Below the pieces are notes generated by a model. It was not told the DNA's origin, did no database searches, and was given only the letters and a program-made list of their open reading frames with translations. From Lepidodermella squamata (taxonomy: Eukaryota; Animalia; Gastrotricha): a stretch of 64,000 nt of DNA. Below are positions 49,584-63,600 of the stretch, piece after piece (the stretch's first letter is position 1; every line of letters starts with the position of its first letter). The stretch lies in NCBI GenBank assembly GCA_047495785.1, contig JBLDXI010000013.1:4216001-4280000 (forward strand), written 5' to 3'. The position numbers and the translations under genes are program-made.

Positions 49584-50411
49584 CTACATTGCAATAATAC
49601 GATAGAACGCCAGGCAAATGGTGAGGCACGAAAAGATAGCACCTATGATTGAGTAATTGAAGCACATGTAAGTATAATAAATCAATGAACTAGAACATAT
49701 GTAGATCTTACCAGCGCTGAATTTCATAATATCGTTCCGGTATTTCTCGAACGTTGTATTTAGGTTGGCCACATGCTTATCGATGGAACCTTCAGTTTGT
49801 AAAATTTGAGTCCTCAAATTTTGGACCTGAAAAAAATTATTAAAATAAAATATAATTAATCAATATTAATTACCTCGCTTTGAGCTCGGCCTTTCTCGAG
49901 ATTGATATCCAGGGTCATGTGGCTCTGAAGCTTGGACAACGAGTCTTTGACCGAATTTTGAAGATTGTTCAATTCGATTTTCATCTTTTCACTTTCAGAC
50001 CGAAGTGCACCGAATTCTGATTTCTCGAGAATAACCATGTCTTTTTTCAACGCGGCAACGTGCGCCAAGACTTGTTGCGAAAAGATTTCCTACAAATTTT
50101 CGAAAAATTGTAATAAATTCAGAAATAAATTGAATTAAAATTACCTGCTGGGCTTTTGTTACAGTAGCTCTTTGAATCGCCTCCATCTGAGCCTGAATTA
50201 TGTTATGCAAAACAGTGCACAGTGCCTCAGATTGTTGAAGCGTGAAACCGGAGGCTTGCAAATTTTTAACCAGCGCGTGCGTGTCAAACGGAACGCTAGT
50301 TTTCGGCGAGGTCAGATCAACATGGCGAACATCCATTCCATCCGATAGAAACCGTCTGGCCAACAGGGGGCGCGAAAATTTCGCAACATTGAATATCGGC
50401 CTCAAACTCAT
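49584..50411 (-). CDS. CCDC90B: Mitochondrial CCDC90/MCUR1 family coiled-coil protein; ~4 exons
   Basis: Mitochondrial presequence, FDTHALVKNLQASGFTLQQSE, KKDMVILEKSEFGALRSE, LDINLEKGR, FEKYRNDIMKFSAG, C-terminal TM CLTICLAFYRI. Confidence 0.9.
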
Positions 50412-50529
50412 TTCTTTGCTAAATTATTCTAAATAAATTCGAACAAATGGTATTTTTTTTACTGCAATAAGACATTCGGCAGTGAAAATTGCGGTATAAA
50501 TAATAGATCAAATAATCAACAAAAATTAA

Positions 50530-53485
50530 TCAAGAAGTGTGACGGTCGAGAACTCGTTGCGTAAATAAAATCTGTTGAGCCCACCCGGCATATGGGCCCC
50601 ATAAATCGCGGAAAAACTGTGAGATTTCCTGGTACATAGCCGGGGTTACCGTGACCTTTTGATTCGATTTCCCTCCCTTTTTCGCTGATGTTAAACACGG
50701 TATTGAGTAGAGTTTGTTCGCAACTTGAAAAACGTGAGTATCGATCGGGACGGCTTCAAATTTGGCTAGGCCAACTAGACTGACGCAATCGGCTACTTTT
50801 CGACCAACGCCTTGAAGTTCTTGAAGCTTCGAGAATGCGACAGAGTACGGGACGTTTCGGTCTTTCAGTTCTTCGAGCCATTTTTCACCGCCTAGGTCTT
50901 CGAGTTGTTGCGCGGTTTTAACGATAAAGCCAGCTCGGTAGCCAAAGCCATGGGCCCTCAATGCTTTTTCCACTCCTAAAAAAACAGTCACAAATAATAT
51001 ATATGAATTTTGTTTTACAATAATATCGATATTGATAGCTAGAGCCTGAGCAATATTATCTCTATCTGCTTTTTTTAAACAGAGACTATCCAAGGCCAGC
51101 TTTCGCTAATTCTTCAAGACGCTGCCACGCCATTTAGGCGGATGTGCAGAAATTAATGGACTTGAAAACATTGGCATTAGCGGGATCATCTATGTTCATC
51201 TATGTAACGGCCAATTATTCCCGAATATGATATGGCAGATGCCAGGAAGTAATTACAAGATTCGCATAGTCTCTCGCTACTTTTATAAGCCTTGAAGTTG
51301 CAATTTATGTTCTTCTTTTGAAGTAGCTGATAACAAAACTTTTTAAAATCACTCTGACGAACTTATCTTATACCTAAGATGAATCAAGAATACATTTTTA
51401 TCAATTTAATCGTTCGGGTTCGGCTGAAATGATTCCGCTGATCTTTTTTAATATATTTCTGCGAGAAGCTCAAACTTGAGCAAAGCAACACCGAAAGTGT
51501 GGTCCAGCAGCTTGGAGCAACTGTCGAATGGCTGAAGACCCTGGTAGATGGTTATCCACAGCGCGTCGGTATTCTGGAGTATTTGAAATCTATACAATAT
51601 CCCTTCAAAATGCAGCTGCGTGGCTACGACGATGAATGCGACGGCCTGGATGTTTTCGCTGAACAAGATATTCAAAATGAATAATTATCATCGTCTTTTG
51701 CTTTACTTCGACCGTTCGACTGAGTGAAAAGTTGATGTTTTGTTGTAGTACGCCATGAAACCAGCGGTTTGGCCCTTTTTGTACGACATCGTATAAGAAA
51801 AAAGTGATTGGCTATGAAATGTCATTTGAAGATTGATAAAGTCAAGCTCTTTTCCCGTGAAACATGAAATCACAAATTATTGCAGCTCGGCCCAACTAAA
51901 TCCGACTATTTCTAGAGGAGCAAATCTCAGGTTTCGCTACATCCTGCGCCCGTTTTTCATGAAGATTTGGAATTTAAACTTTTTAGATAAAATGAATAAA
52001 ATAAGGGATCAATTATTCTCGCGTTGGAAATTCTTAGTGGGCCTTAGTGGATCTCTTTCGCTTTGTCGAAATTAACGACCAACGATCCATGAGCCACCGT
52101 GACCCGTGACTATAGTTCTACACTTCGGGTTCGGTTAAAATGATTCCACTGGCCTTTTTCCATCTATTTCTTCATCATGCGCCTTTTGATCACTTCACCT
52201 ACTTTAAAAAAATAACTGACGATTCTAAATTTAGCGCCATTGTTTTACATTTTACATTCCACTACACTCTGAACTGTACCAACACCTGGGATGTGGTTAT
52301 ACCGTTCCGAACACATCCTACTTTTACACACTTCTCCGTTAATCAAAAAATTGTGTGGCAACAAAGTCAAAATTTTGTAAACACCATATATGACACTCTC
52401 CAGGACGACGACGGAACTAAAATTCTAGGTCTAGATTGATCTCGAGCGGCTGAGCCGGCGGCGCCCGTGGTGGGATGCCAGGAGCGACACATCGAACGCG
52501 ACGAAGAATGCAAATACGCGATTCTTTGCCCATATTGCGCATAGCAAATCACATCGTACCTTCCACGAAAGCCGAAATCCGCGACAATAGAAAGACAACT
52601 AATGAATCGCAGCACTTGTCCATCAATCCGCAAATTCAGACTAATGATCAAGTACTACAGAGTACCAGTGTAGGCACTTCAAGAGGTAATCGACAAATGT
52701 GGAGCTTGGAGATTCTGTTTTTCTTCTATTTATTTTTCTAATTTATTTACTGTGGACTCAAAATTGCATATTTATTCAAGTATCGGAAACCTCATTATAC
52801 TCTTCAGCACAAACTTTAATGTTGAGGTACCCCTACCATTTCCCAACCCTTCGATATCTATCTCACAGATTAGCCAAAATGAAAAGCAATTCTCACCTTC
52901 ACCGATCAATGCTGACGGTTTCGGAAATGTGAAATAGTCGACGTCTTCGATAGTTCCAATTTTCTCACCATACAACGTCGCAAGACTGTTGACCATTTTG
53001 GAAATCCTCGGTATGTTATTATTCGACGAGCAGATGTAAGAAAACAAAGCTTCAAGAGGCGGTACAGCTAACACTCGGGCGCCATTCGTATTGAGCGATT
53101 CGGCAGCTAAATTCACGTCGTTTTTCGCCCATTCTTTAAGGAGGCTAGCATAATCAACGTGAAGATTGAAATAAGATCGCAGAAATTTGGCTGGGTCGAA
53201 ATTTACAGGGTCTTGAACGAGAGACGACCTGGCTGTTATCAGAATGGAATTGTCAATCTGAACAAGATCGAAAATGAATTTATCGACCACGCCTCGCCAT
53301 ATCGTTGAAGATTCGCGAGAGATTTTATTCCATCGAAACGCTTGACCGGCTGGGAGGACCCTGTCAAGGGATAAAATCGACGGCGGGCAGTCTCTGATTT
53401 CTCCTGTGAAAATGTGTAGCTCAGGCTTTTTCAACAGCTTCGCTTCTATTTTACTGCAAACATTCGCCGCAATTTTTCTCTTCAT
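50530..53485 (-). CDS. OGG1: 8-oxoguanine DNA glycosylase/AP lyase; 2 exons (53485-52897, 50975-50530)
   Basis: LDRVLPAGQAFRW, FSYICSSNNNIPRISKMV, LRAHGFGYRAGFI, HhH-GPD LQGVGRKVADCV (catalytic K), VPIDTHV (catalytic D), WGPYAGWAQQILF; GTGAGA..TTTAG intron keeps the frame. Confidence 0.96.
51430..51690 (+). mobile_element. Possible MULE-like transposase C-terminal remnant in the OGG1 intron
   Basis: IYFCEKLKLEQSNTESVVQQLG..LKTLVDGY..ILEYLKSI resembles the I.F...LK.EQ...LEYL..I tail of MULE-type transposases (recognised from memory). Confidence 0.45.
52400..52720 (+). mobile_element. Possible LINE ORF2 C-terminal Cys-rich remnant in the OGG1 intron
   Basis: GCQERHIERDEECKYAILCPYCA*QITSYLPRKPK..QLMN, interrupted by stops; resembles the IEDE.H.IL.CP.Y motif at LINE C-termini. 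Confidence 0.45.
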
Positions 53486-53754
53486 TTCTCTTATTAGCAA
53501 AGAATACTAGAGTCAAAACAAAACAGCAAATGTGAAAGTAATATCGTTTTTTATTGTTGAATTGATTCCTACGAATTGATGATAAACAATGGAACTGGAT
53601 AATCGGCATACATAGACAACGAGCTCTACAGTCGGTGCGCGAAATAACCGAAACGCCAATTTAGTAGTATTACACTTCTCGGCCTATGGGTGAATTTCAT
53701 CATCAGCATCATCAAAAATCGCAACATTTAGGTAAAAACATCGAGTTCTTGTTT

Positions 53755-56282
53755 CTAGTAACCACCACCCCTCGGAGATAGCAGCTTCGAGCAATGCGCC
53801 GAGTCTGGGAACAGTTCGTGGTAGGTAGGCATTGGAACGTATCCGGCGGTGATGGTTTTGCCGCCGAACCACCGACCGTGGAGGGCATTCACCGCGGCAT
53901 TCGCAGCTGCCACTGACGGACATTTGCAGTAGACGTTGCCCTGCGAGTTCGGGTCGACGAAGATGTGTAACACGCCGCCGTGTTTGTTGCACTCATCGAT
54001 GACATCGTCGCGAATTTCGATATCCCAGCCTGGCTCGGTTTCGCTAAAATAACGGAAAATAAAGTCATTATACTTCAAACTTTCTAGAAAAATTCAATTA
54101 TGAGAGGGGAATATGCTTAGATGATTTATCAAGGACATAATTTAGGTCAGATGACAATTGTGATAAAAACAGGCATAACTTACTTTTGAGGATCGAACAT
54201 ATTAGTTAGCATGAAACAAGGCGTAGCGATAGGAGGCGCAGCAGCTGCTGCAGTTTGTTGAATACCAGGCGGTAACTGATTTAGCACATTTTGGGCAGAT
54301 TTCGGCAACTCCATTCCCGTACCCTCGGCCAATTTAGCCATCAACTGAATTCGACCGCGAGCACCAAGTCCAATACCGGTTCGATCGATTTCGTCGTTGT
54401 CAAGCGACGGTCCCATTGAAATGTCACTGGAACCGACTGGGCCAACCGCTGAGGCAATACCTCGTTCGGTTACGTAAGTCACCTTCAAATTTCGACCAGC
54501 AACTTCGAAACCGTTCATTTGCTGCATAGCTTTTTGCGCAGATTCTCCAGTTCGAAACTAAGAATAAAAAATTATTACATTATGAAGTTCATTTTTCAGA
54601 GACTTACAGTAACAAAGCCGTATCCTCTCGATTTACCCAGATCATCAATGACAATATTGAGGTGTTCAACTGTTCCGAACGGTTCCATAATTGACCGCAG
54701 CATGTTTTCGTTAATATTAGGATGCAGATTGCCAATGTACAGCTTGACGTGTTGGGACAACGCAGTGCCGTAAGTGCTCAAATGGGCGTTTTTAATGGCA
54801 GCTGTCGATGCCGCGTTCATAGCTGCTAAACGATTTTTCTCTGCCATAGAGGGTTGAACGACAATAGGAATGCCTAGTAACTTCTTGCCGGCAAAACTCA
54901 AGGCAGCCGTGGCTTGTTTCGGCTCTTCGAACTCAACATAGGCAAGACCTTTGGACTTTCCGGTTTTGAAGTCTGTGATCAGTTTCACGTCGTGAACTTT
55001 TCCGACTGGGGCGAAGAAATCGATGAGATCCCGCCGCCGGCATCTCGCGGCCAACTGCATGCAGAATACGGTGCGAGCATCGCGCTCTTCAGCGGATAAG
55101 TCTTCACGGGGTGGTTTTGGTGAGGGCGAACGGCCCCCGCCGCCACCGCTGCTCGGTGGCTTGTTCAAGCTGGACTTCGGTGCATACAGACGCCCCATGG
55201 ATGAGATTTTCTCAGAATCAGCACCTCGCCGATCATAGTCGCGGTCAAACCGTTCTTTTTCTCGCCCTTTGTCTCTCGTATCGCGGTCGCGATCTTTATC
55301 CCGGCCATTTTTCGAGCTTCGGTCGGTTGGGGAGCGTGATCGAGATCGGTGTTTTCGAGACCTGAAAAGCAAAACAGCTAAGATTATTGACTAGTCGACA
55401 AACGAAAGCCCGTTTTTCAATAAAGGTCGCGCAAAAAACGTGAGGAAATACTCGCGAATCAGCCTAGGTCACACTAAAAAAGATAAATATCAATCAATTG
55501 AAAATGACTGCAGCAGTCATGTCGGTTCCAGCGTCGTAGAGTGTAAAGCGAATCGACCGGATAGAGCAGCGCTCAATGCAATCTATAATTCTTTCAAAAT
55601 CGACAACAGCCTTGTGGCCGTTGCCTAGGCGAAAGAATACATGCTCTTACCAGATTTAACGAGGTTCATTTGAGTGCGATGATGGTTGCTATGAGGTTTA
55701 AAGATCCTAATAGTCGACACGAAAAGTGAATTTGGGTGATATGTTTAAAAAACTGGGACAAGAAGCATACTGTCAGATTATTCAACGGCAATTTGCGATC
55801 TGAAAAGAAACGGCACAGCGTTTAGGTTCAATCACTGAAACTGAATTCAATATCCGCAGCACCATAGTGCCAACTTTACCATGTGTCGTCGAGCGGTGTC
55901 TTGGTGACAGTCAGGAAGCACGAATTCGACAAAATCGATAGGAATTGATGTTCGCATTCACCCTTACATTTAGCAAAATCAGAATGCATATGCCGGTTCA
56001 AATAATGACCCCCAAAAATTATTGTTTAAAAGAGTTTAAGCGACATTATACGTTTGTCAGAAAAGTATGCAAGGAATGCAAGAATGACCATTTATGATCT
56101 AGTAATAACGTGAAACATACTTTCTATCGCGATCTTTGTCTCCATCTGACGACATTACGGTGATGGGCTGCAATAAAACACGTTCGTTACACACAATTCT
56201 GCATTAAAAGCTCAAATCTCACCATTTTGTCGTTACGGTAAGCAGCTTCCAAAAGAGCGTGAACATCATCGTCGTCCGCCAT
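53755..56282 (-). CDS. RBM39: RNA-binding protein 39 (CAPER; RS, RRM1, RRM2, UHM); multi-exon, ATG at 56282
   Basis: MADDDDVHALLEAAY, EERDARTVFCMQLA, VQPSMAEKNR, LYIGNLHPNI, GRIQLMAKLAEGTG, IATPCFMLTNMFDP, ALHGRWFGGKTITA. Confidence 0.97.
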
Positions 56283-57521
56283 TGTTATTTTGAATTAATC
56301 ACTATGTTAAGTAGAGCAATTCATAATAAGAAAATATTTTCAATTTGCCAGACATGGACTCGTGCCACGAAACAACTTTTCCGGATTATTAACTCCAAAA
56401 TGAGCCTCCTGAACTTCCAGAATCAGTGATCAGTGTTCCGTACAAAAAACAAGGGAGCAAACTTTTGCAACGAACAATCACCGAGCAGGGTTCGCATAAC
56501 GCGATAACAAGTTGCAGCAATATGAAGAGTACTATACGGTCGCATGGGGCACATCCTCTTGTACTATTCCTTACAAGCACATCCTCGGCAAAATATGCAA
56601 CCTCTGACAGCCGATCGCCGCTGGAGATAAAAAGAAACGGCAACAGGCAACATGCCAAAATAACGTCTAGCGAAAAGCGAATCTAATTTTGTTTCTGCAT
56701 TTCGTATTTTTACGTTCTGGGCTAAAAGCAGTGTGAATCTGTTCTACTCCCGGTCTAGGAAGGTCTGATGTCTGATGATAATAATGATGGCGTTTACGTC
56801 ATCCATGAGGGTTTTGCTGGTTTCGAAGTGGAGGCTGGAGGCAACAATTCGCAATTCGGGCAGTTAAAAGTCACCATCCATTGTTATTGCGTATTGCGGT
56901 CGCGTATAGTCGCTAGGCGCTAGATCGTTGATATCGTCTAGATCAGGGATAACGAAAACGAAACCCGAAAAACCAATTTATTCTGAAATCTTTAGGGATA
57001 AGGGACAGGTCTAAAAACGGAGAAGGTAAGGAACCTCTGAAAAAACTCGAGAAAAAACTGACGCAAAAATCCTCTTCATAAATAGTTTTGAACTTTAAAT
57101 ATAATTATAAAATGGAAATAATTTAATAATAAATAGCTAATGCTGTTTTCTCTCCCGGATATTAATTATAACAAAATGCGGGGTATCAAAAGCAATTTTC
57201 AGAAAGCGAAAAGGGGCCTAGTTTCGCAATTTTTCCGGAGTTCGCGGGTCATATCTGTCCACTGCCCTTCCTCTTTCCCCCTCCCACGTAGTTTTAATAC
57301 ATAGGCCTTACTGGTAGCCTACATCACTACATCAAATTTACTAGACCATTTTTCATGGCTCACGGAAAAGGGTGAAGTTTTCACTTAATTTTTAATTTAC
57401 AACCCACGCAGACGTATATTATATTAATCATCACTATGATTGCTGCCGTTTCCCCATGACATGACAATTCATTATTTTCTTTGGCGTTGTCTAATGATAG
57501 GTCTCTGCGTTTCTTGTAATA

Positions 57522-58214
57522 ATGGACGACAAAGATCTGGACGAGCTACTTGATGAGATAAATTCTTTCCCTTCCAAAAGCGCTACTCGGAGACATGGCA
57601 GTACTGATCAAGATCTGGATAATTTTTTGGGCGACTTGTGCGCGGAGATGGACGATTCTTTGAAGAAAACAGCTGAAGTCAAGCTTTCTCTTGGAGTTAC
57701 TCCTTCTCCGCGGATTGTAACTTCTGCGTCTCAGAGGTTAATTTCGTGCTTAGTGCATGTCAGGAATTTTTAATTCATGTGGTTTAGATGCTATCCGGTG
57801 TTTCTGGGCACTCCAAACCATTCTTCTGGTTTAAGCAATTTCAGCGCATCCAGGTATGCTTCATTTTATATTACTGTGCGAAGTTAAATGTTCATTATTG
57901 AACTAGGTGCTGCGATCGGTTGCGCTGTACTGAATGCGATTTTGCTGTGTCCAACTTCGACAATGTTATCTGGGCTGATTCAACCACATATTTATTTTTG
58001 AGAAATAATATGCCAGATATTAAAAAACTTGGTTCTCAATTGATATCAAAAGCAGGTAGGTCTAAAGGCCACAGATGGACAGAATATTCTTATATTGTCT
58101 TCATTCATAGGATCTAGAGCTTACGCTTGCCAATGTAAATTTTATAATGCCTCCGATTTGATCGAAGTTTCATCGCTGCAATCATTCCGATGGGTCTGTG
58201 GTAAACATTGCTAA
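57522..58214 (+). CDS. CFAP418: Cilia- and flagella-associated protein 418 (C8orf37); 4 exons
   Basis: MDDKDLDELLDEI N-terminus; spliced RCYPVFLG..RCCDRLRCTECDF..YLFLRNNMPD..RAYACQC..RWVCGKHC*. Confidence 0.93.
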
Positions 58215-58578
58215 ACCTTGGACTTGCTACTGATCTCTTCTTTTAATAATATTGATACAAAAATTTACATCTTGTGATATTGAAGTCAATTTTCATAGCT
58301 GGTTTTGTTGTGATTTCATGTGCTGCGTTATGCATTATGAATTGCGTAATGTTTAGTTTGCGCCTGTATATTGCTCATTTTTGAATGTAACACGTTAGAT
58401 GTTCACTTGAAGCAGCATGATCTCATCGAGATAATTGAAAATTTACGTTGGATATATTTATTAATTGTTTCAGTTTGATCTCTTTGAATGTGATACTGGC
58501 CGCTTAGCTGTATGTTGTTCATGGATACAACGAGTTTCATAATCCTATTTCTATTTCTATTTATTTTAGATTATAATT

Positions 58579-59010
58579 ATGTCTGGTAAATCAGAAATAC
58601 TTGCACTTGACCCATCGACAGAGCTGAGGTTTAAAGGGCCATTAATCGACGTGGTAACTACCCAGTTGAAGCTGATTAATTTCACCGATCGTCCTGCTTT
58701 ATTTAAAATTAAAACTACCACGCCCAAGTCTTATTTGATCAAACCTAATTTGGGAACAATCGCAGCCGGTCAAAACGCCGTCGTAGCCGTCATTTTTCAG
58801 CCATTCCAAGACAATCCGGAAGACCAACCGAAGGACAAGATCTTGGTGCAGAGTATGTTCGCTCCCGATGGTAATTACGATGAGGAAAAGATTTGGAAAG
58901 ACGCCAAGTCGGACGACATTGTCGCCGTGCGGCTACGATGTACTTTCGACGTGTCGGCGGGAGCATCCGCCGCCTCTGCCCATTCTGCCTCGCAAACTCT
59001 CGGCTCATAG
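58579..59010 (+). CDS. Truncated VAP paralogue: MSP domain only (143 aa), no coiled coil or TM; either a functional gene or a young pseudogene
   Basis: Intact ORF colinear with the downstream VAP without indels; TAG replaces TCG at codon 144. Confidence 0.65.
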   Translation: MSGKSEILALDPSTELRFKGPLIDVVTTQLKLINFTDRPALFKIKTTTPKSYLIKPNLGTIAAGQNAVVAVIFQPFQDNPEDQPKDKILVQSMFAPDGNYDEEKIWKDAKSDDIVAVRLRCTFDVSAGASAASAHSASQTLGS

Positions 59011-59024
59011 TCGGCTGCGGATTT

Positions 59025-59100
59025 GAAGCTTACGCTTGCCAACATAAACTTGATAATGCCACTGATTTTATCATTCCGATGGGTCTGGGATAAACATACC
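59025..59100 (+). pseudogene. Decayed copy of the CFAP418 last exon
   Basis: Aligns to 58117-58214 with deletions and substitutions that destroy ACQC...WVCGKHC. Confidence 0.85.
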
Positions 59101-59366
59101 TTGGAATTGCTACTGATCTCTTCTTTTATGACATTGATACAAACTTGCACCCTGTGATATTGAAGTTAATTTTCTAACTGGCTTTGTTGTGATTTCCTGT
59201 GCTGCGTTATGCAATATGAATTAATTAATGTTTAGTCTACGCCTGTATTTTGCTCATTTTTGAATGTAATACTGGCCGCTGAGCTGTATGGTGTTAATGG
59301 ATACAACGAGTTTCATAATCCTTAATATCTTTATATATTTGCTTTAGACATATTGTGGTTATAATT

Positions 59367-60619
59367 ATGTCTGGTAAATCAGAAATTCTTGCACTTGACC
59401 CAGCGACGGAGCTGAGGTTTAAAGGGCCATTTATCGATGTGGTAACTACCCAGTTGAAGCTGACAAATTCCACCGATCGCCCTGCCCTATTCAAAATTAA
59501 AACCACCGCACCCAAGTCTTACTGTGTTAGACCTAATTCGGGAACAATCGCAGCCGGTCAAAGCGCCGTCGTAGCCGTCATGTTGCAACCATTCGAATAC
59601 AATCCGGAAGACAAGCCGAAGCACAAATTCATGGTGCAGAGCATGTTCGCCCCCGATGGTAATTACGACGCGGAGAAAATCTGGAAAGACGCCAAGTCGG
59701 ACGACATAGTCGACGTGCGGCTACGATGCGCTTTCGACGTGTCAGCGGGCGCCGCCGCTGCCTCTGCCCTGTCCGCCTCGCAACCTCTCGGCTCGTCGTC
59801 GGGTGCGGCGTCAGGCCTGCAATCCGGTTCTCTTTCACAAAGCACTGGCCAATCCACGCTGCAAGGCGCCGCGTCTTGGTACGCCGCAGATAGCAGCGCC
59901 GACTCTCAGGGTCATGTTAAACAGGTTTATTCAACTCAAACCGCAGAATTTCTAGTATGCAACACTTTTTCGTTTCGTTTGCAGGCGATAGCTGCTGATG
60001 GTTCCGATTCGAAAGTTTTCGATGAAAATCGGCGTCTTGTATCAGAAATTAACTCCCTTCGCAAAGAGCTCGAAGCAGCTAAGGTAAGCGTTGTGACAAA
60101 TTTTGGGTTTCCATGCCAAATTTCAGTTGTGATAGTAAATTGTTTAGGGTAATATTCTACTGATTGGCCTTGTTAAAATTTAGGCGCTTATCTTTGATTG
60201 AAATCTTATTTATCAGCTGAATTCTCGAGAAATCGGTATTTACATTATTAGCCGGAATCTTTGATATTTTATTAAGGAGGATTTAAATTTTTCCGATAAA
60301 TTGTATTGAAGATTTCATGATTTTTCTGTCAAATTCAAGTGATGTTTTAGAATAATTTTTAGACGAATTTATATGATGATTTCTGGTTTTCATGAATTGT
60401 TTTCATTTTTAGGAGGAACGTGCTCGTTTGCGTCATGCAACTCTCTTAGATACTGTCCGGCAACCACAAGGCGCGACCATCAAGTCCTCGGTATCCCCTT
60501 TACACCCGGCGAACGGACAGGTTGATACTATTCAAAGTTTGCTGCAGTCGCCTCTCGCCCTGGCTCTCTTCGTATTCGTTTTCGTCGTCGGTGTCGGGGT
60601 CGGGAAGTTGTTCATGTAA
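59367..60619 (+). CDS. VAPA: VAMP-associated protein (MSP, coiled coil, TM). Exons ~59367-59924, 59985-60083, 60413-60619
   Basis: FKIKTTAPKSYCVRPNSG VAP consensus, KHKFMVQSM, coiled coil ENRRLVSEINSLRKELE, C-terminal TM ending GVGVGKLFM. Confidence 0.95.
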
Positions 60620-63600
60620 AAATTATCAACCCGACCTCGCGCTCGCCCGGCCACGCGTTTGAAAAATATAATAATAATATTGTTACATAGCATTCAAAAG
60701 TCACACTTCGGTGGGCACAGTAAATTAATCATCGTTAATTACTACCTTCTAAATTGAAACTACCCTTGTAGCCGCATTTTTTCGTTCAAAATTGGGACTA
60801 TACTTTTAATTTTTAGCTGATGATCCAATTCAGTTGTAAGTCGAGTTGTAAATATGCGCCTGGTTTTTTTTGATATAATTATAAAAAATGGCGCACGGCT
60901 TTGATTCTTTTTTCTCGTCTTCTTTTTACTGATGAATTAATTGAAAAAGGGTGCAAGTCATCGTTGTATTAATTGTATGATAATAATAATAATCAACCTT
61001 CAGAAGTCGAGTTCGTCCTCCGGCTCGATCTTTTACATTCATCCCGGCGTTATCAGGCGGTGTGTGCTTATTCTTAATTTGTTATTTGTACTAATGATAA
61101 TGATGATGATCTATCGAAAAAATCGAACTCCACCTTGAAAATAATAGTTGTAAAAGCCACCTCTAATTTCTGCTTTCCATCGCCTGTTGTAGTCGCTGCG
61201 CATCTTCACTACAAGTGTTTGTTTACTCTCCATAAGCTATCCGCGCCGGTCCGCATCGGCCTCAGTCTTAGGAAAACACCGCTACTACTGCCAGATCTGG
61301 AGAGGTTATGATGATACCAGATAGTTTGTACACACGAGGCAATATCTGTTTGCTATTATAACATTAACGGCTCTATGCAGCATGAAAAAGAGCGTGATAA
61401 TAACCGCAGTTTGTCTAACCTGAATCGAAACTTCCGCCTTGGCGCAGGGGCTTAAGAAATCTATTTTACAGATAACATAATTTATTTTAATTTTTCGCAT
61501 GCGTACTAGGGTAGTTTTTAGATCCATCCTTATTTAAGTTGAATCAAGTTAACGTTTCGCGCTCAAATGAAACTAATGGCACCGATGTTGCAAGAATTTC
61601 CCTCCGAAATTGCACTCTATTGGTGTCATTGCAATTGCTTGTTGTTGTGCTAAATGTCGTGTGGATACTGATTGTTATTATTCTATCTAATATTCGAGTG
61701 ATTTACGAAGATGATGGTACAGATTTTAGGCTATCGTAGACTGAAAATCACATCAAGGCATTGCTTTGTCTTCCTATCCTAGCCTATGATCCTCTCGCGC
61801 GAAAACAATTCACAAGAGTAGCGGCTAAAAAATCACCGTAATTTTGTTCTGTTTTCGTGTAATAATAATTATCAGCTTGATTTTTGTAACATCGCCCCTT
61901 CAAGGCCAAAGACCTTGCGGTTCTAACTTGAAACACTACCGATTCATCAACTACCAAGCAGTCTGTGTTCTATAGCGGCCCATCCTCGACATGTAGTATT
62001 TAAACATCAACATTAAAAACTGTTTTGCTCCTTGATTTTTCACTCAATTACCTTGTAAGCCTTTAGTTGTCTTGAACAGACGCAAAATTGATAAATTATA
62101 TACCGCGGAGCACGCTTATCTTCCTCGTTCCTCGTCATCTATGTTCATCTCATATATTGAATAATTAACACAAAAGAAATATTGTAATATGATATCGACG
62201 GCTTGCTTCGTTTTCTGAAAACCAGCGGAAATAGTGAAAAAATAATCGCGGCTGTTTTCACGCAAAAACACACTTAATTTTTTGTGTCGTTGAAGTACAT
62301 CGCCGAGACGCGCTTGAATGTGCATGGAAGCGATCGCTATTGTAATTTAAATGTCTATGCTGTGGTTTTTCGCTTGATTCATGTCATGAATATTTCTTCT
62401 CTCCTGGTCGTTGACACAACAAATAAAATTGGACATTAGCCTGAGTTGCGGTCGTCTGTTTTTTTTATTATTATTATAAACGAATCAAATCGAGCCGATG
62501 AATAATCTGTTTTGTAGATTTTTCGGGCAAGGAAATCGCCGGCATGAAATAACTTTAATACGCCATTTATTCTTGGCTTTATCTCCCGTGGGCAAGCGAT
62601 TAGGTACACATTTTTTCGCTTGAAATCGATTTTTACCCATTTGTATTATCACGCGAGTCACGCTTGCTGGAGGGCTTTTTCTCTTCTAGTTCAAAATGCC
62701 CTCAACCATTATTTTATCGATCGGCCTGCGTTTACCACAGTTTTTTTCTCCAGTAGGTATCCGAGAGCGCGATTGTCGTATATTAGTGGGTAATATTATA
62801 TGAACTGCGTGAGAATTACAAGGCTAAATATAGGAGCCAAAACACGTGAAGAGCAGCCGCAGCAGGGCGCGCCGCAATAAACCAAGCGAATGAATCGAGT
62901 GACTGAGCCTACTACAACGGCGGCTTGATTTTTTGAACGAGTCTTTTTTTACACACTTGAGTCGGCTCTCGCTTTTAAAGATGCTGCTTACGCCTTGCGC
63001 CGTGCTTGAGTGATCTCTTATACGGCGCTAGTAAAAAGCTTACATTAGAATTCAGAGTGGCAACTCAGTTTCACGGTATCCTGCTTCATTGTCCTCACAC
63101 CTGTGAAAAACAGTACCTAATATTATCGCAGAAAATATTCCAGTAGGTATCAATATTTTTTCCAGATGTCCCTAAATTATTCTGCGGCTCGTTCATACTC
63201 AAGTTAAAAATCATCGGAAATGACGTCATCAATTATTTTTATTTCACAAAAAACCACATTCGGTTAGCATTCTCGTTAAAGGTGTGATTTTCTGAGCTAT
63301 GAGCGTTCAAGGTGAAAGAGAAATGAGATATTTGAAAATTTGATTACACCGTGTTATATAGGCAAGGTAATGTTTTTGAAATGCCACAATGCATCGCTTT
63401 GCCGTAATTCGTTGCGTCATTTTGGGGGTAAATACCGTGGAATTATCTGGTTGCCGGTTTCTTCCGGATGACGTAGGAATGGCAGTATTCAGGTGGCAGA
63501 TGTGTCAACAGAATAGCCGCGCCCACATTGAAAGTTATACAATTTAAATAGCAGCGTAGTAATAACAATTATTATATATTATACGAAAGACAGCAGGAAC

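Follow-up and report, generated by a model that had tools for sequence, protein, structure and literature searches.

The VAP locus in the window, a stretch of 64,000 nucleotides from the gastrotrich Lepidodermella squamata, is a tandem segmental duplication whose units lie head to tail. Its upstream unit carries a truncated VAP copy (copy A), which is a new instance of an already known class, the young partial gene duplicates, and we give a probability of about one half to the reading of copy A as a young proto-gene that is dispensable and on which selection is weak or has lapsed. The direct repeats form two units in tandem, A and B, which are ~87-88% identical and have a start-to-start spacing of 776-909 nt, bearing out the ~0.9 kb tandem duplication proposed in an earlier note on this DNA. 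Outside VAP the 335 aligned positions include 39 mismatches, and the units further differ by 8 indel events; the indels which that note had reported for the co-duplicated non-VAP DNA are thus present, against none across the 143 codons of copy A. The duplicated elements and the upstream neighbour CFAP418 are located as follows:

57522-57736, 57788-57853, 57907-58055 and 58111-58214, + strand: CFAP418 (C8orf37/RMP), four exons with three GT..AG cDNA joints; PF14996; orthologue in L003
58110-59018 (909 nt), + strand: duplication unit A, with the functional CFAP418 last exon, spacer 1 and the truncated VAP copy; direct-repeat families D1-D4
58390-58492, + strand: segment of ~90-103 nt found in spacer 1 only, with TTTGAATGT repeats on both flanks
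59019-59806 (788 nt), + strand: duplication unit B, with a relic CFAP418 exon copy, spacer 2 and the first ~147 codons of the full VAP
59020-59097, + strand: duplicate of the CFAP418 last exon, decayed by deletions of 20 nt and 6 nt, now within the transcribed region 3' of copy A

At the junction of the units VAP codon ~147 is joined to the CFAP418 splice site. The junction is crossed without mismatch by a k-mer contig from the raw reads of DNA run X1 (58585-59417) and by a cDNA contig from run X2 (58632-59254), which belongs to a different study and year, so the A/B arrangement is real and not an assembly artefact. The genome to which the window belongs contains only these two VAP copies. In three metagenome contigs of a relative there is a single VAP with CFAP418 147 nt upstream, and because the related species has one VAP beside CFAP418 the duplication is lineage-specific. 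Searches of other genomes and metagenomes turned up no orthologue of copy A: a metagenome scan with copy A gave no relative, the first protein search returned two hits only, and the exact-protein look-up of copy A and of the unspliced VAP ORF found nothing on record.

The full VAP gene (copy B) consists of three exons, the first of which begins inside unit B, and the last exon of CFAP418 matches the Pfam family RMP (PF14996, E 5.8e-10). The VAP exons and the cDNA contig over copy A are:

58632-59254, + strand: X2 cDNA contig of 623 bases, exact; it runs from copy A codon 18 through codon 143 and the stop, on across the junction, and for 244 nt more
59367-59924, + strand: VAP exon 1, MSP domain and linker, 186 codons; spliced cDNA joint 59924/59985
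59985-60083, + strand: VAP exon 2, start of the coiled coil; GT..AG joints in cDNA
60413-60619, + strand: VAP exon 3, coiled coil, C-terminal membrane anchor and stop; Kyte-Doolittle value of 2.49 at exon residues 48-66

Run X2 is recognised as cDNA by five GT..AG joints in its contigs at the predicted introns, by zero depth across the 329-nt VAP intron and upstream of CFAP418, and by a SMART cDNA oligo at one contig end. A 24-nt loose end before 57499 in X2 was considered as a trans-spliced leader and dropped, having no match in the genome; we take it to be the reverse complement of the SMART IIA cDNA oligo. The copy A region is transcribed, as the exact contig listed above documents (depth 40.7, contig depth being unsuited to ranking expression). 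The earlier note had called for copy-specific reads and had treated a missing transcript as the mark of a pseudogene; the transcript exists. The zero X2 depth on 59255-59358 indicates that the copy A RNA is separate from the VAP mRNA. The idea that copy A is a mutually exclusive alternative first exon of VAP was rejected, since none of the joints departs from copy A and the cDNA passes unspliced through stop and junction. No X2 contig lies on 58540-58631, and X2 does not show where the copy A transcript begins.

The reading frame of copy A has these elements:

58579-59010, + strand: copy A ORF of 143 codons and TAG, encoding the MSP domain and an 18-residue Ala/Ser tail; matches to PF00635 and to MSP structures
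59008-59010, + strand: TAG stop of copy A, a C-to-A change where copy B keeps TCG, 8 nt 5' of the junction

With the stop at codon 144 and the end of the duplication at codon ~147, both the ORF and the duplicated segment finish upstream of VAP exons 2 and 3, and copy A has no coiled coil. A scan with 19-residue hydropathy windows found no hydrophobic segment and no C-terminal transmembrane tail anchor, the top Kyte-Doolittle value being 1.29 as compared to 2.49 in VAP exon 3. The domain itself is well preserved: Pfam Motile_Sperm (PF00635) matches with 94 bits over profile positions 2-106 of 109, VAPA/VAPB MSP structures match residues 5-127 (E ~1e-36), and copy A aligns position for position with human VAPB. 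With 143 residues and a single MSP domain it fits the size of a stand-alone MSP fold (~125-145 residues). ORF and hydropathy thus agree with the earlier description of an upstream VAP copy of 143 aa which ends after the MSP domain and is devoid of coiled coil and TM segment. Compared to copy B, the 143 codons show 55 nucleotide differences, 24 amino-acid differences and 0 indels, which leaves copy A 83% identical to the VAP protein across 143 residues; the retained coding part has no frameshift and no premature stop, and the previous manual estimate of ~24 differences without indels or internal stops was accurate.

The protein changes are strongly asymmetric, with 17 polarisable amino-acid changes unique to copy A and 0 unique to copy B/VAP (P 1.5e-5). 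The two motif changes quoted in the earlier note are exact: TTAPKSYCVRPNSG of VAP has become TTTPKSYLIKPNLG in copy A, and KPKHKFMVQ has become QPKDKILVQ. Its statement that the changes concentrate in the most conserved VAP motifs also holds, as 14 of the 21 changes within the domain fall on sites that are 98-100% invariant in 121 VAP homologues, and the copy A residue is never seen there. Changes at sites invariant in animal VAPs indicate that copy A has been released from VAP-type constraint. Sites that are at least 90% conserved make up 16 of 21 changed and 55 of 104 unchanged positions (P 0.056). Replaced hydrophobic residues remain hydrophobic (F22L, C53L, V54I, M72I, L73F, F88I, M89L), charge-changing replacements include Y78D, K83Q, H86D and D116A, and the net charge of the domain shifts from +1 to -1.

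The remodelling of the FFAT-binding face is not borne out in the form proposed. Four FFAT contacts are changed in copy A (V54I, S58L, F88I, M89L), but PMC7705450 lists 14 contact positions, and 10 of these are the same as in VAP; K43, K45, T46, T47, N57, K87 and R118 are kept, including every basic contact residue. The M89L replacement occurs naturally in MOSPD2, and the changes in copy A are not enriched in the FFAT-contact set (Fisher P 0.19). As far as the sequence can tell, the word 'remodelled' is overstated.

The sequenced animal appears to be heterozygous for a deletion of copy A. In X1 the DNA depth passes from 89.5 to 58.5 and back to 91.6, with 58615-59387 at ~2/3 of the flanks, so that ~1/3 of the depth bypasses this segment. 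Breaks in the X1 graph lie at 58614/58615 and 59387/59388, a pair of A/B diagnostic sites homologous to each other; the X1 contigs end at 58614/58585 and 59417/59388. The putative crossover site is short:

58600-58614, + strand: 15-nt stretch identical to 59388-59402, probable crossover site of a second haplotype without copy A; flanking diagnostic sites checked

The putative deletion haplotype is deduced from graph structure and depth. The published genome, if it is the same assembly, comes from one highly heterozygous animal (~3% heterozygosity) with structurally different haplotypes. A haplotype without copy A would make copy A dispensable, and the apparent heterozygous deletion speaks against the birth of a gene, which the earlier note had said segregating loss-of-function alleles would do.

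Tests of selection on copy A gave borderline results. The pairwise omega between copies A and B is 0.29, corresponding to an omega of ~0.57 for copy A, with branch dS assumed equal and synonymous changes not polarisable. Polarising the latter was attempted and abandoned, with third positions of the outgroup saturated (85 of 120 differ) and a split of 8 to 8 with 9 ambiguous. A null model in which copy A evolves neutrally and copy B is frozen is not rejected (LRT 3.3-3.7, P 0.054-0.069), and in this respect the earlier phrase 'birth of a gene' goes too far. The neutral yardstick is itself uncertain, as third codon positions differ by 23% and the spacer by only 10.5%. The substitution spectrum is strongly GC-to-AT (34 vs 12), the pattern that decay would give as the sequence approaches the base composition around it. 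Gene conversion that would hold the ORF open was discarded, the coding divergence of 12.8% not being below that of the spacer (10.5-11.6%), and the uniform X1 depth over 59388-60090 excludes a converted extra copy.

The intactness of the ORF could point to a stronger claim, which follows the earlier note, namely a new, independently born gene for a selectively maintained, soluble MSP-only protein that was adaptively remodelled toward an altered motif specificity or new ligand preference, or toward a role as regulatory decoy or ligand. Copy A has 0 indels where ~1.8-3.7 are expected (P 0.03-0.16), the lack of an internal stop has P ~0.27, and under strict neutrality the joint probability of an intact ORF is ~0.7-4% despite ~38 substitutions; this would imply more selection than 'weak or lapsed'. 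Four weak tests combined give P 0.012-0.049, with the tests partly correlated and the locus chosen because it is intact. The tendency of changes toward conserved sites, the conservative hydrophobic replacements, the charge changes and the transcription of copy A also fit a maintained gene. Neutrality nevertheless stands in the omega test, the replacements do not significantly exceed random ones in conservativeness (P ~0.1-0.19), FFAT contacts are not enriched, the spectrum is that of decay, and copy A is missing from the putative second haplotype and from the other genomes and metagenomes searched. A selectively maintained gene therefore seems unlikely to us, but it deserves serious consideration.

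Slightly less credence goes to the opposite view, according to which copy A is a non-coding relic whose ORF is intact by luck and whose RNA is read-through, a long CFAP418 3' UTR isoform or promoter leakage, never translated. An omega compatible with 1, changes at universally invariant VAP residues, the GC-to-AT decay and the apparent haplotype without copy A are what a relic would show. In X2, moreover, the CFAP418 3' region is covered beyond 58408 and no contig lies over the copy A start codon region. The coverage then has a gap before the copy A contig, whereas read-through would give continuous cover, and the intact ORF is improbable by chance. Spacer 1 represents the sequence that originally lay upstream of VAP and, since it must drive VAP on the putative single-copy haplotype, would be a working promoter in front of the unchanged ATG context of copy A. 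That two haplotypes of one locus were set in tandem by the assembly is very improbable, because the heterozygosity and structural haplotype differences of the published genome and the reduced DNA depth, which would suit such an error, are outweighed by the mismatch-free X1 and X2 contigs across the junction, by the 12% divergence and 8 indels between the units, and by a junction at which VAP codon 147 meets a CFAP418 splice site.

The preferred reading, a dispensable proto-gene, can be put into a sequence of events. A tandem duplication of 0.9 kb, which began at the 3' splice site of the CFAP418 last exon and reached as far as VAP codon ~147, by construction yielded a self-contained upstream unit in which the original VAP 5' region (spacer 1) precedes an MSP-encoding exon fragment, with a second CFAP418 terminal exon and 3' region placed behind that fragment. 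The point mutation to TAG, three codons before the junction, closes the transcribed ORF, whose product, if translated, would be a soluble MSP domain of 143 residues with neither coiled coil nor membrane anchor. Since the duplication the VAP protein has stayed unchanged, every polarisable change having fallen on copy A. We infer that copy A may be translated and may bind FFAT motifs; low-level soluble competition for FFAT-motif ligands would be its most plausible activity, if it has any, because K43, K45, T46, T47, N57, K87 and R118 are kept.

Among known proteins, copy A derives from its own VAP and resembles the ER tethers VAPA/VAPB (VAP33, Scs2) in most FFAT contacts, but 14 invariant residues are replaced and, lacking the coiled coil and tail anchor, it cannot tether to the ER. 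VAPC, a splice variant of VAPB, acts as a competitor, and the cleaved, secreted MSP domain of VAP is a reported ligand (PMC9213790). Like copy A, both are VAP-derived and without coiled coil and membrane anchor, but they arise by splicing or proteolysis from one VAP gene whereas copy A is a separate DNA copy; VAPC is moreover described as unstructured, while copy A retains the whole MSP domain. The MSP domain of MOSPD2 has Leu at the position of VAP M96 (here M89), as in copy A, and still binds FFAT; its N57/S58 pair is swapped (PMC7705450), and copy A too differs from VAP at this pair. Unlike copy A, a recent truncated VAP copy, MOSPD2 is a paralogue of old standing that is anchored in the membrane and carries a CRAL-TRIO domain. 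Plant VAP27 was dropped as an anchor-less clade for comparison, as the VAP27 paper makes no such statement. Nematode major sperm proteins share the stand-alone MSP fold and similar size (PDB 1GRW vs copy A, E 1.4e-6), but are distant in sequence and form large, sperm-expressed, polymerising families. This genome has seven PF00635 matches only and no MSP family expansion, and we found no evidence for the MSP-like cytoskeletal role suggested earlier.

If copy A were translated and selected, it would represent a clean, datable origin of a stand-alone MSP protein from VAP, caught within a fraction of one synonymous substitution per site of its origin, with promoter, coding domain and 3' end all supplied by one small duplication; the adjacent parent VAP would serve as internal control, and a natural deletion allele would allow comparison of phenotypes. 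At present it is an ordinary young partial duplicate and a worked case in which an intact ORF and RNA are not yet proof of a gene. Young partial and chimeric duplicates in Caenorhabditis elegans are short and tandem, end inside genes, borrow flanking sequence and are mostly short-lived. Copy A shares the short tandem duplication, the ends inside genes and the borrowed flanks, but differs in having borrowed its 3' region from a duplicated part of the upstream neighbour and in being still intact at ~12% divergence.

Within the window lies a head-to-tail duplication in which unit A (58110-59018) is followed directly by unit B (59019-59806). The duplicated segment starts at the 3' splice site of the terminal CFAP418 exon and ends at about codon 147 of VAP. 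In unit A the CFAP418 exon is functional and the VAP fragment (copy A) redundant; in unit B the start of VAP (copy B) is functional and the copy of the CFAP418 exon redundant. The features are as follows.

CFAP418 (C8orf37), the gene upstream of the duplicated VAP; its last exon matches Pfam RMP (PF14996, E 5.8e-10)
58579-59010, copy A, an open frame of 143 codons with 55 substitutions and 0 indels relative to copy B
59367-59924, VAP exon 1, encoding the MSP domain (PF00635, 107 bits)
59985-60083, VAP exon 2, encoding with exon 3 the coiled coil and hydrophobic tail anchor
60413-60619, VAP exon 3, encoding with exon 2 the coiled coil and hydrophobic tail anchor

The spliced VAP model was searched one exon at a time. 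Both VAP introns are confirmed by spliced contigs and the three CFAP418 introns by a cDNA contig; the downstream gene is a normal VAP. The redundant CFAP418 exon copy of unit B has decayed (20-nt and 6-nt deletions, 15% mismatch) and the spacers of the two units differ by six further indels. Copy A terminates at a TAG in place of a TCG codon, 8 nt before the duplication junction. The duplication and the truncated, transcribed and fast-evolving MSP-only ORF are real, and their description in the earlier note was accurate in every detail checked. By its extent, the duplication supplied copy A with an upstream region that works and with a 3' region already in place. A segment of ca. 90-103 nt of the spacer upstream of copy A (58390-58492), flanked by direct repeats of TTTGAATGT, is absent from the spacer upstream of VAP; the length difference reflects either an insertion into unit A or the loss of this segment from unit B by microhomology deletion. 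The CFAP418 cDNA contigs of two runs end within this segment, at 58408 and 58416.

Parts of the stretch were found in four public runs, the k-mer contigs of which were placed on 56800-62000. The DNA run X1, probably the source of the assembly, yielded a contig (58585-59417) that leads from the copy A coding region across the junction into VAP. A second run, X2, differs from X1 in study, year and organism label. It is cDNA, since all five predicted introns are spliced out of its contigs at GT..AG, its depth is zero both in the 329-nt intron of VAP and in the region before CFAP418, and one contig end carries, before 57499, 24 unaligned letters which we take to be the reverse complement of the SMART IIA cDNA oligo. 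A spliced leader was considered for these letters and rejected, because they have no match in the genome and were recognised as the oligo; what they mark is a cDNA end, 23 nt before the ATG of CFAP418. A single 623-base X2 contig (58632-59254, 0 mismatches) spans codons 18-143 of copy A, the stop codon, the junction, the relic exon and part of the spacer before VAP, which shows that the MSP-only ORF is transcribed. No X2 contig covers 59255-59358, and the copy A RNA is therefore not the 5' part of an extended VAP mRNA. There is also no X2 contig on 58540-58631, so the 5' end and start codon region of the copy A transcript are unseen in this run; the gap lies at sequence common to both units and may stem from the assembly graph. 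Contigs of copy A (depth 40.7), CFAP418 (99) and VAP (183-430) indicate presence only, not level.

A protein search with copy A returned two proteins only, one of them a 185-residue product encoded on three ENA metagenome contigs. These contigs carry CCDC90, OGG1, RBM39, a CFAP418 orthologue and VAP in the same order as the window (640-6890 of contig L003 versus 49584-60619), and the exons of the CFAP418 orthologue are 49-84% identical to those of the window. In this relative a single VAP lies 147 nt downstream of CFAP418, versus a spacer of 364 nt in the window, and no second MSP copy was found on its metagenome contigs. The genome from which the window derives (121.2 Mb, 151 contigs searched) contains these two VAP copies only and seven MSP-domain matches overall. 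The duplication is therefore lineage-specific, and with only seven such matches there is no nematode-type MSP expansion; nothing was found in favour of the cytoskeletal role that the earlier note had suggested. The relative's VAP has a 51-nt GT..AG intron between codons 120 and 121 (L003:6361-6411) that is missing from both copies in the window; the lineages thus differ by one intron gain or loss.

When the metagenome relative is used as outgroup (120 codons), 17 amino acid differences can be assigned to copy A alone and 0 to VAP alone, with 3 left ambiguous (P 1.5e-5); saturation of third positions with respect to the outgroup prevents any polarisation of synonymous changes. A codon-model fit gave a pairwise omega of 0.29, which corresponds to ca. 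0.57 for copy A if VAP has an omega near 0 and the branches are equal. A neutral copy A beside a frozen VAP would give a pairwise omega of 0.5. Tested against this null, neutrality is not rejected (LRT 3.3-3.7, P 0.054-0.069). The substitution spectrum from copy B to copy A is strongly GC-to-AT (34 versus 12), which fits decay toward the AT-rich local composition. In neutral simulations the chance of zero stop codons after 38 substitutions was ca. 27%, and the excess of conservative replacements in copy A was not significant. Scaling from the 8 indels in co-duplicated non-coding DNA, 1.8-3.7 indels are expected in copy A (P(0) 0.03-0.16), and the joint chance of an intact frame is ca. 0.7-4%. 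The four weak tests combined give P 0.012-0.049, to be read with the tests being partly correlated and the locus having been noticed for its intactness. In our reading this is modest evidence for some constraint on the copy A frame during at least part of its history. At the synonymous positions 59465 and 59480 the X2 VAP has T, the state of copy A, where the assembly has A and C; either the assembly VAP allele is derived there or short conversion tracts are involved.

Copy A aligns with human VAPB position for position. Among the 121 best-scoring VAP homologues, mostly vertebrate where named, 14 of the 21 domain changes in copy A fall on sites that are 98-100% invariant (F22L, A48T, C53L, V54I, R55K, S58L, M72I, L73F, Y78D, K83Q, H86D, F88I, M89L and D116A), and the copy A residues at these sites never occur in that set. 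Conservation at the changed sites is not lower than at the unchanged ones and, if anything, higher (P 0.04-0.06), and hence copy A has been freed from the constraints on VAP. Contact side chains named from the VAPA-FFAT structures are, in VAPB numbering, K43, I44, K45, T46, T47, P49, Y52, V54, N57, S58, K87, F88, M89 and R118 (PMC7705450). The earlier note had called this face remodelled. It is altered in that four of the 14 contacts have changed (V54I, S58L, F88I, M89L), but the word is too strong, since the other ten are kept, including every basic one and K87 of the classical K87/M89 pair, and changes are not enriched in the contact set (4/14 versus 17/111, P 0.19). In MOSPD2, which binds FFAT, leucine is natural at the M89 position (PMC7705450). 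Charge-changing replacements lie outside the contacts (Y78D, K83Q, H86D, D116A, A102E, E77Q) and shift the net charge of the domain from +1 in VAP to -1 in copy A, a shift that could make the electrostatic first step of FFAT capture weaker. The FFAT face may thus be weakened around a core that appears intact.

The X1 contigs suggest that the sequenced animal also carries a haplotype without copy A. In the 31-mer graph (contig overlaps of 30 letters), the upstream contig ends at 58614 (depth 89.5), the copy A contig has a depth of 58.5 and the VAP contig begins at 59388 (depth 91.6). The first break lies directly before 58615 (T in copy A, G in copy B) and the second directly after 59387, where copy B has T and the corresponding base of copy A, 58599, is A; a run of 15 letters between the diagnostic sites is identical in both units. 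Breaks at these homologous sites are exactly what is expected from a haplotype that is A-type up to 58614 and B-type from 59403. Such a haplotype would have lost copy A, the junction and the spacer before VAP through unequal crossover and would still encode a normal VAP. About one third of the X1 depth bypasses copy A, and adjacent heterozygous intron alleles have depths of 62 versus 46. The VAP contig has a uniform depth, which excludes a converted extra copy in place of a deletion. Because both flanks are identical between the haplotypes, the single-copy form would be a recent derivative and not the ancestral state. We infer the deletion haplotype with its short junction contig unseen; if it exists, the animal has copy A on one chromosome only, and one dose or none is evidently tolerated on that chromosome. 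The X2 VAP contig starts at 59357-59359, exactly 30 letters (k-1) before the first diagnostic site at 59387, with two unaligned letters, and looks as a graph branch would if that sample also contained a haplotype with an A-type upstream region and a B-type coding region.

That the frame is intact speaks for copy A being a gene in evolutionary terms. On the side of a dispensable proto-gene or relic stand the omega test, the decay from GC to AT, the changes at invariant sites, the absence from any relative and the inferred deletion allele. Should a protein be made, its most economical mechanism would be weak competition for FFAT-type ligands by the soluble MSP domain. Both truncated VAP products (VAPC, the cleaved MSP domain) and stand-alone MSP proteins (nematode MSPs) have been described before and partial tandem duplicates are common, and we therefore rank copy A as one more case of a known type.

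For Lepidodermella squamata, an assembly of 122 Mb in 157 contigs, with ca. 3% heterozygosity, has been published from one animal of a commercial culture. In X1, VAP intron 2 (60061-60435) is present as two alleles (depths ca. 62 and 46); over 150-190 nt these are separated by 5-9 substitutions and several short indels, and local heterozygosity in a single animal is therefore ca. 5-7%. Another X1 contig matches from 58545 on and is preceded by 51 unrelated letters ending in ...CTTCTCTATTTT; it may be another allele of the spacer upstream of copy A or a low-complexity match from elsewhere. Finally, X2 covers 60620-62000 without a gap, at a depth like that of VAP (336 for the contig that spans 60810-62000 and continues further), which suggests a VAP 3' UTR of >1.4 kb or a different transcript there.
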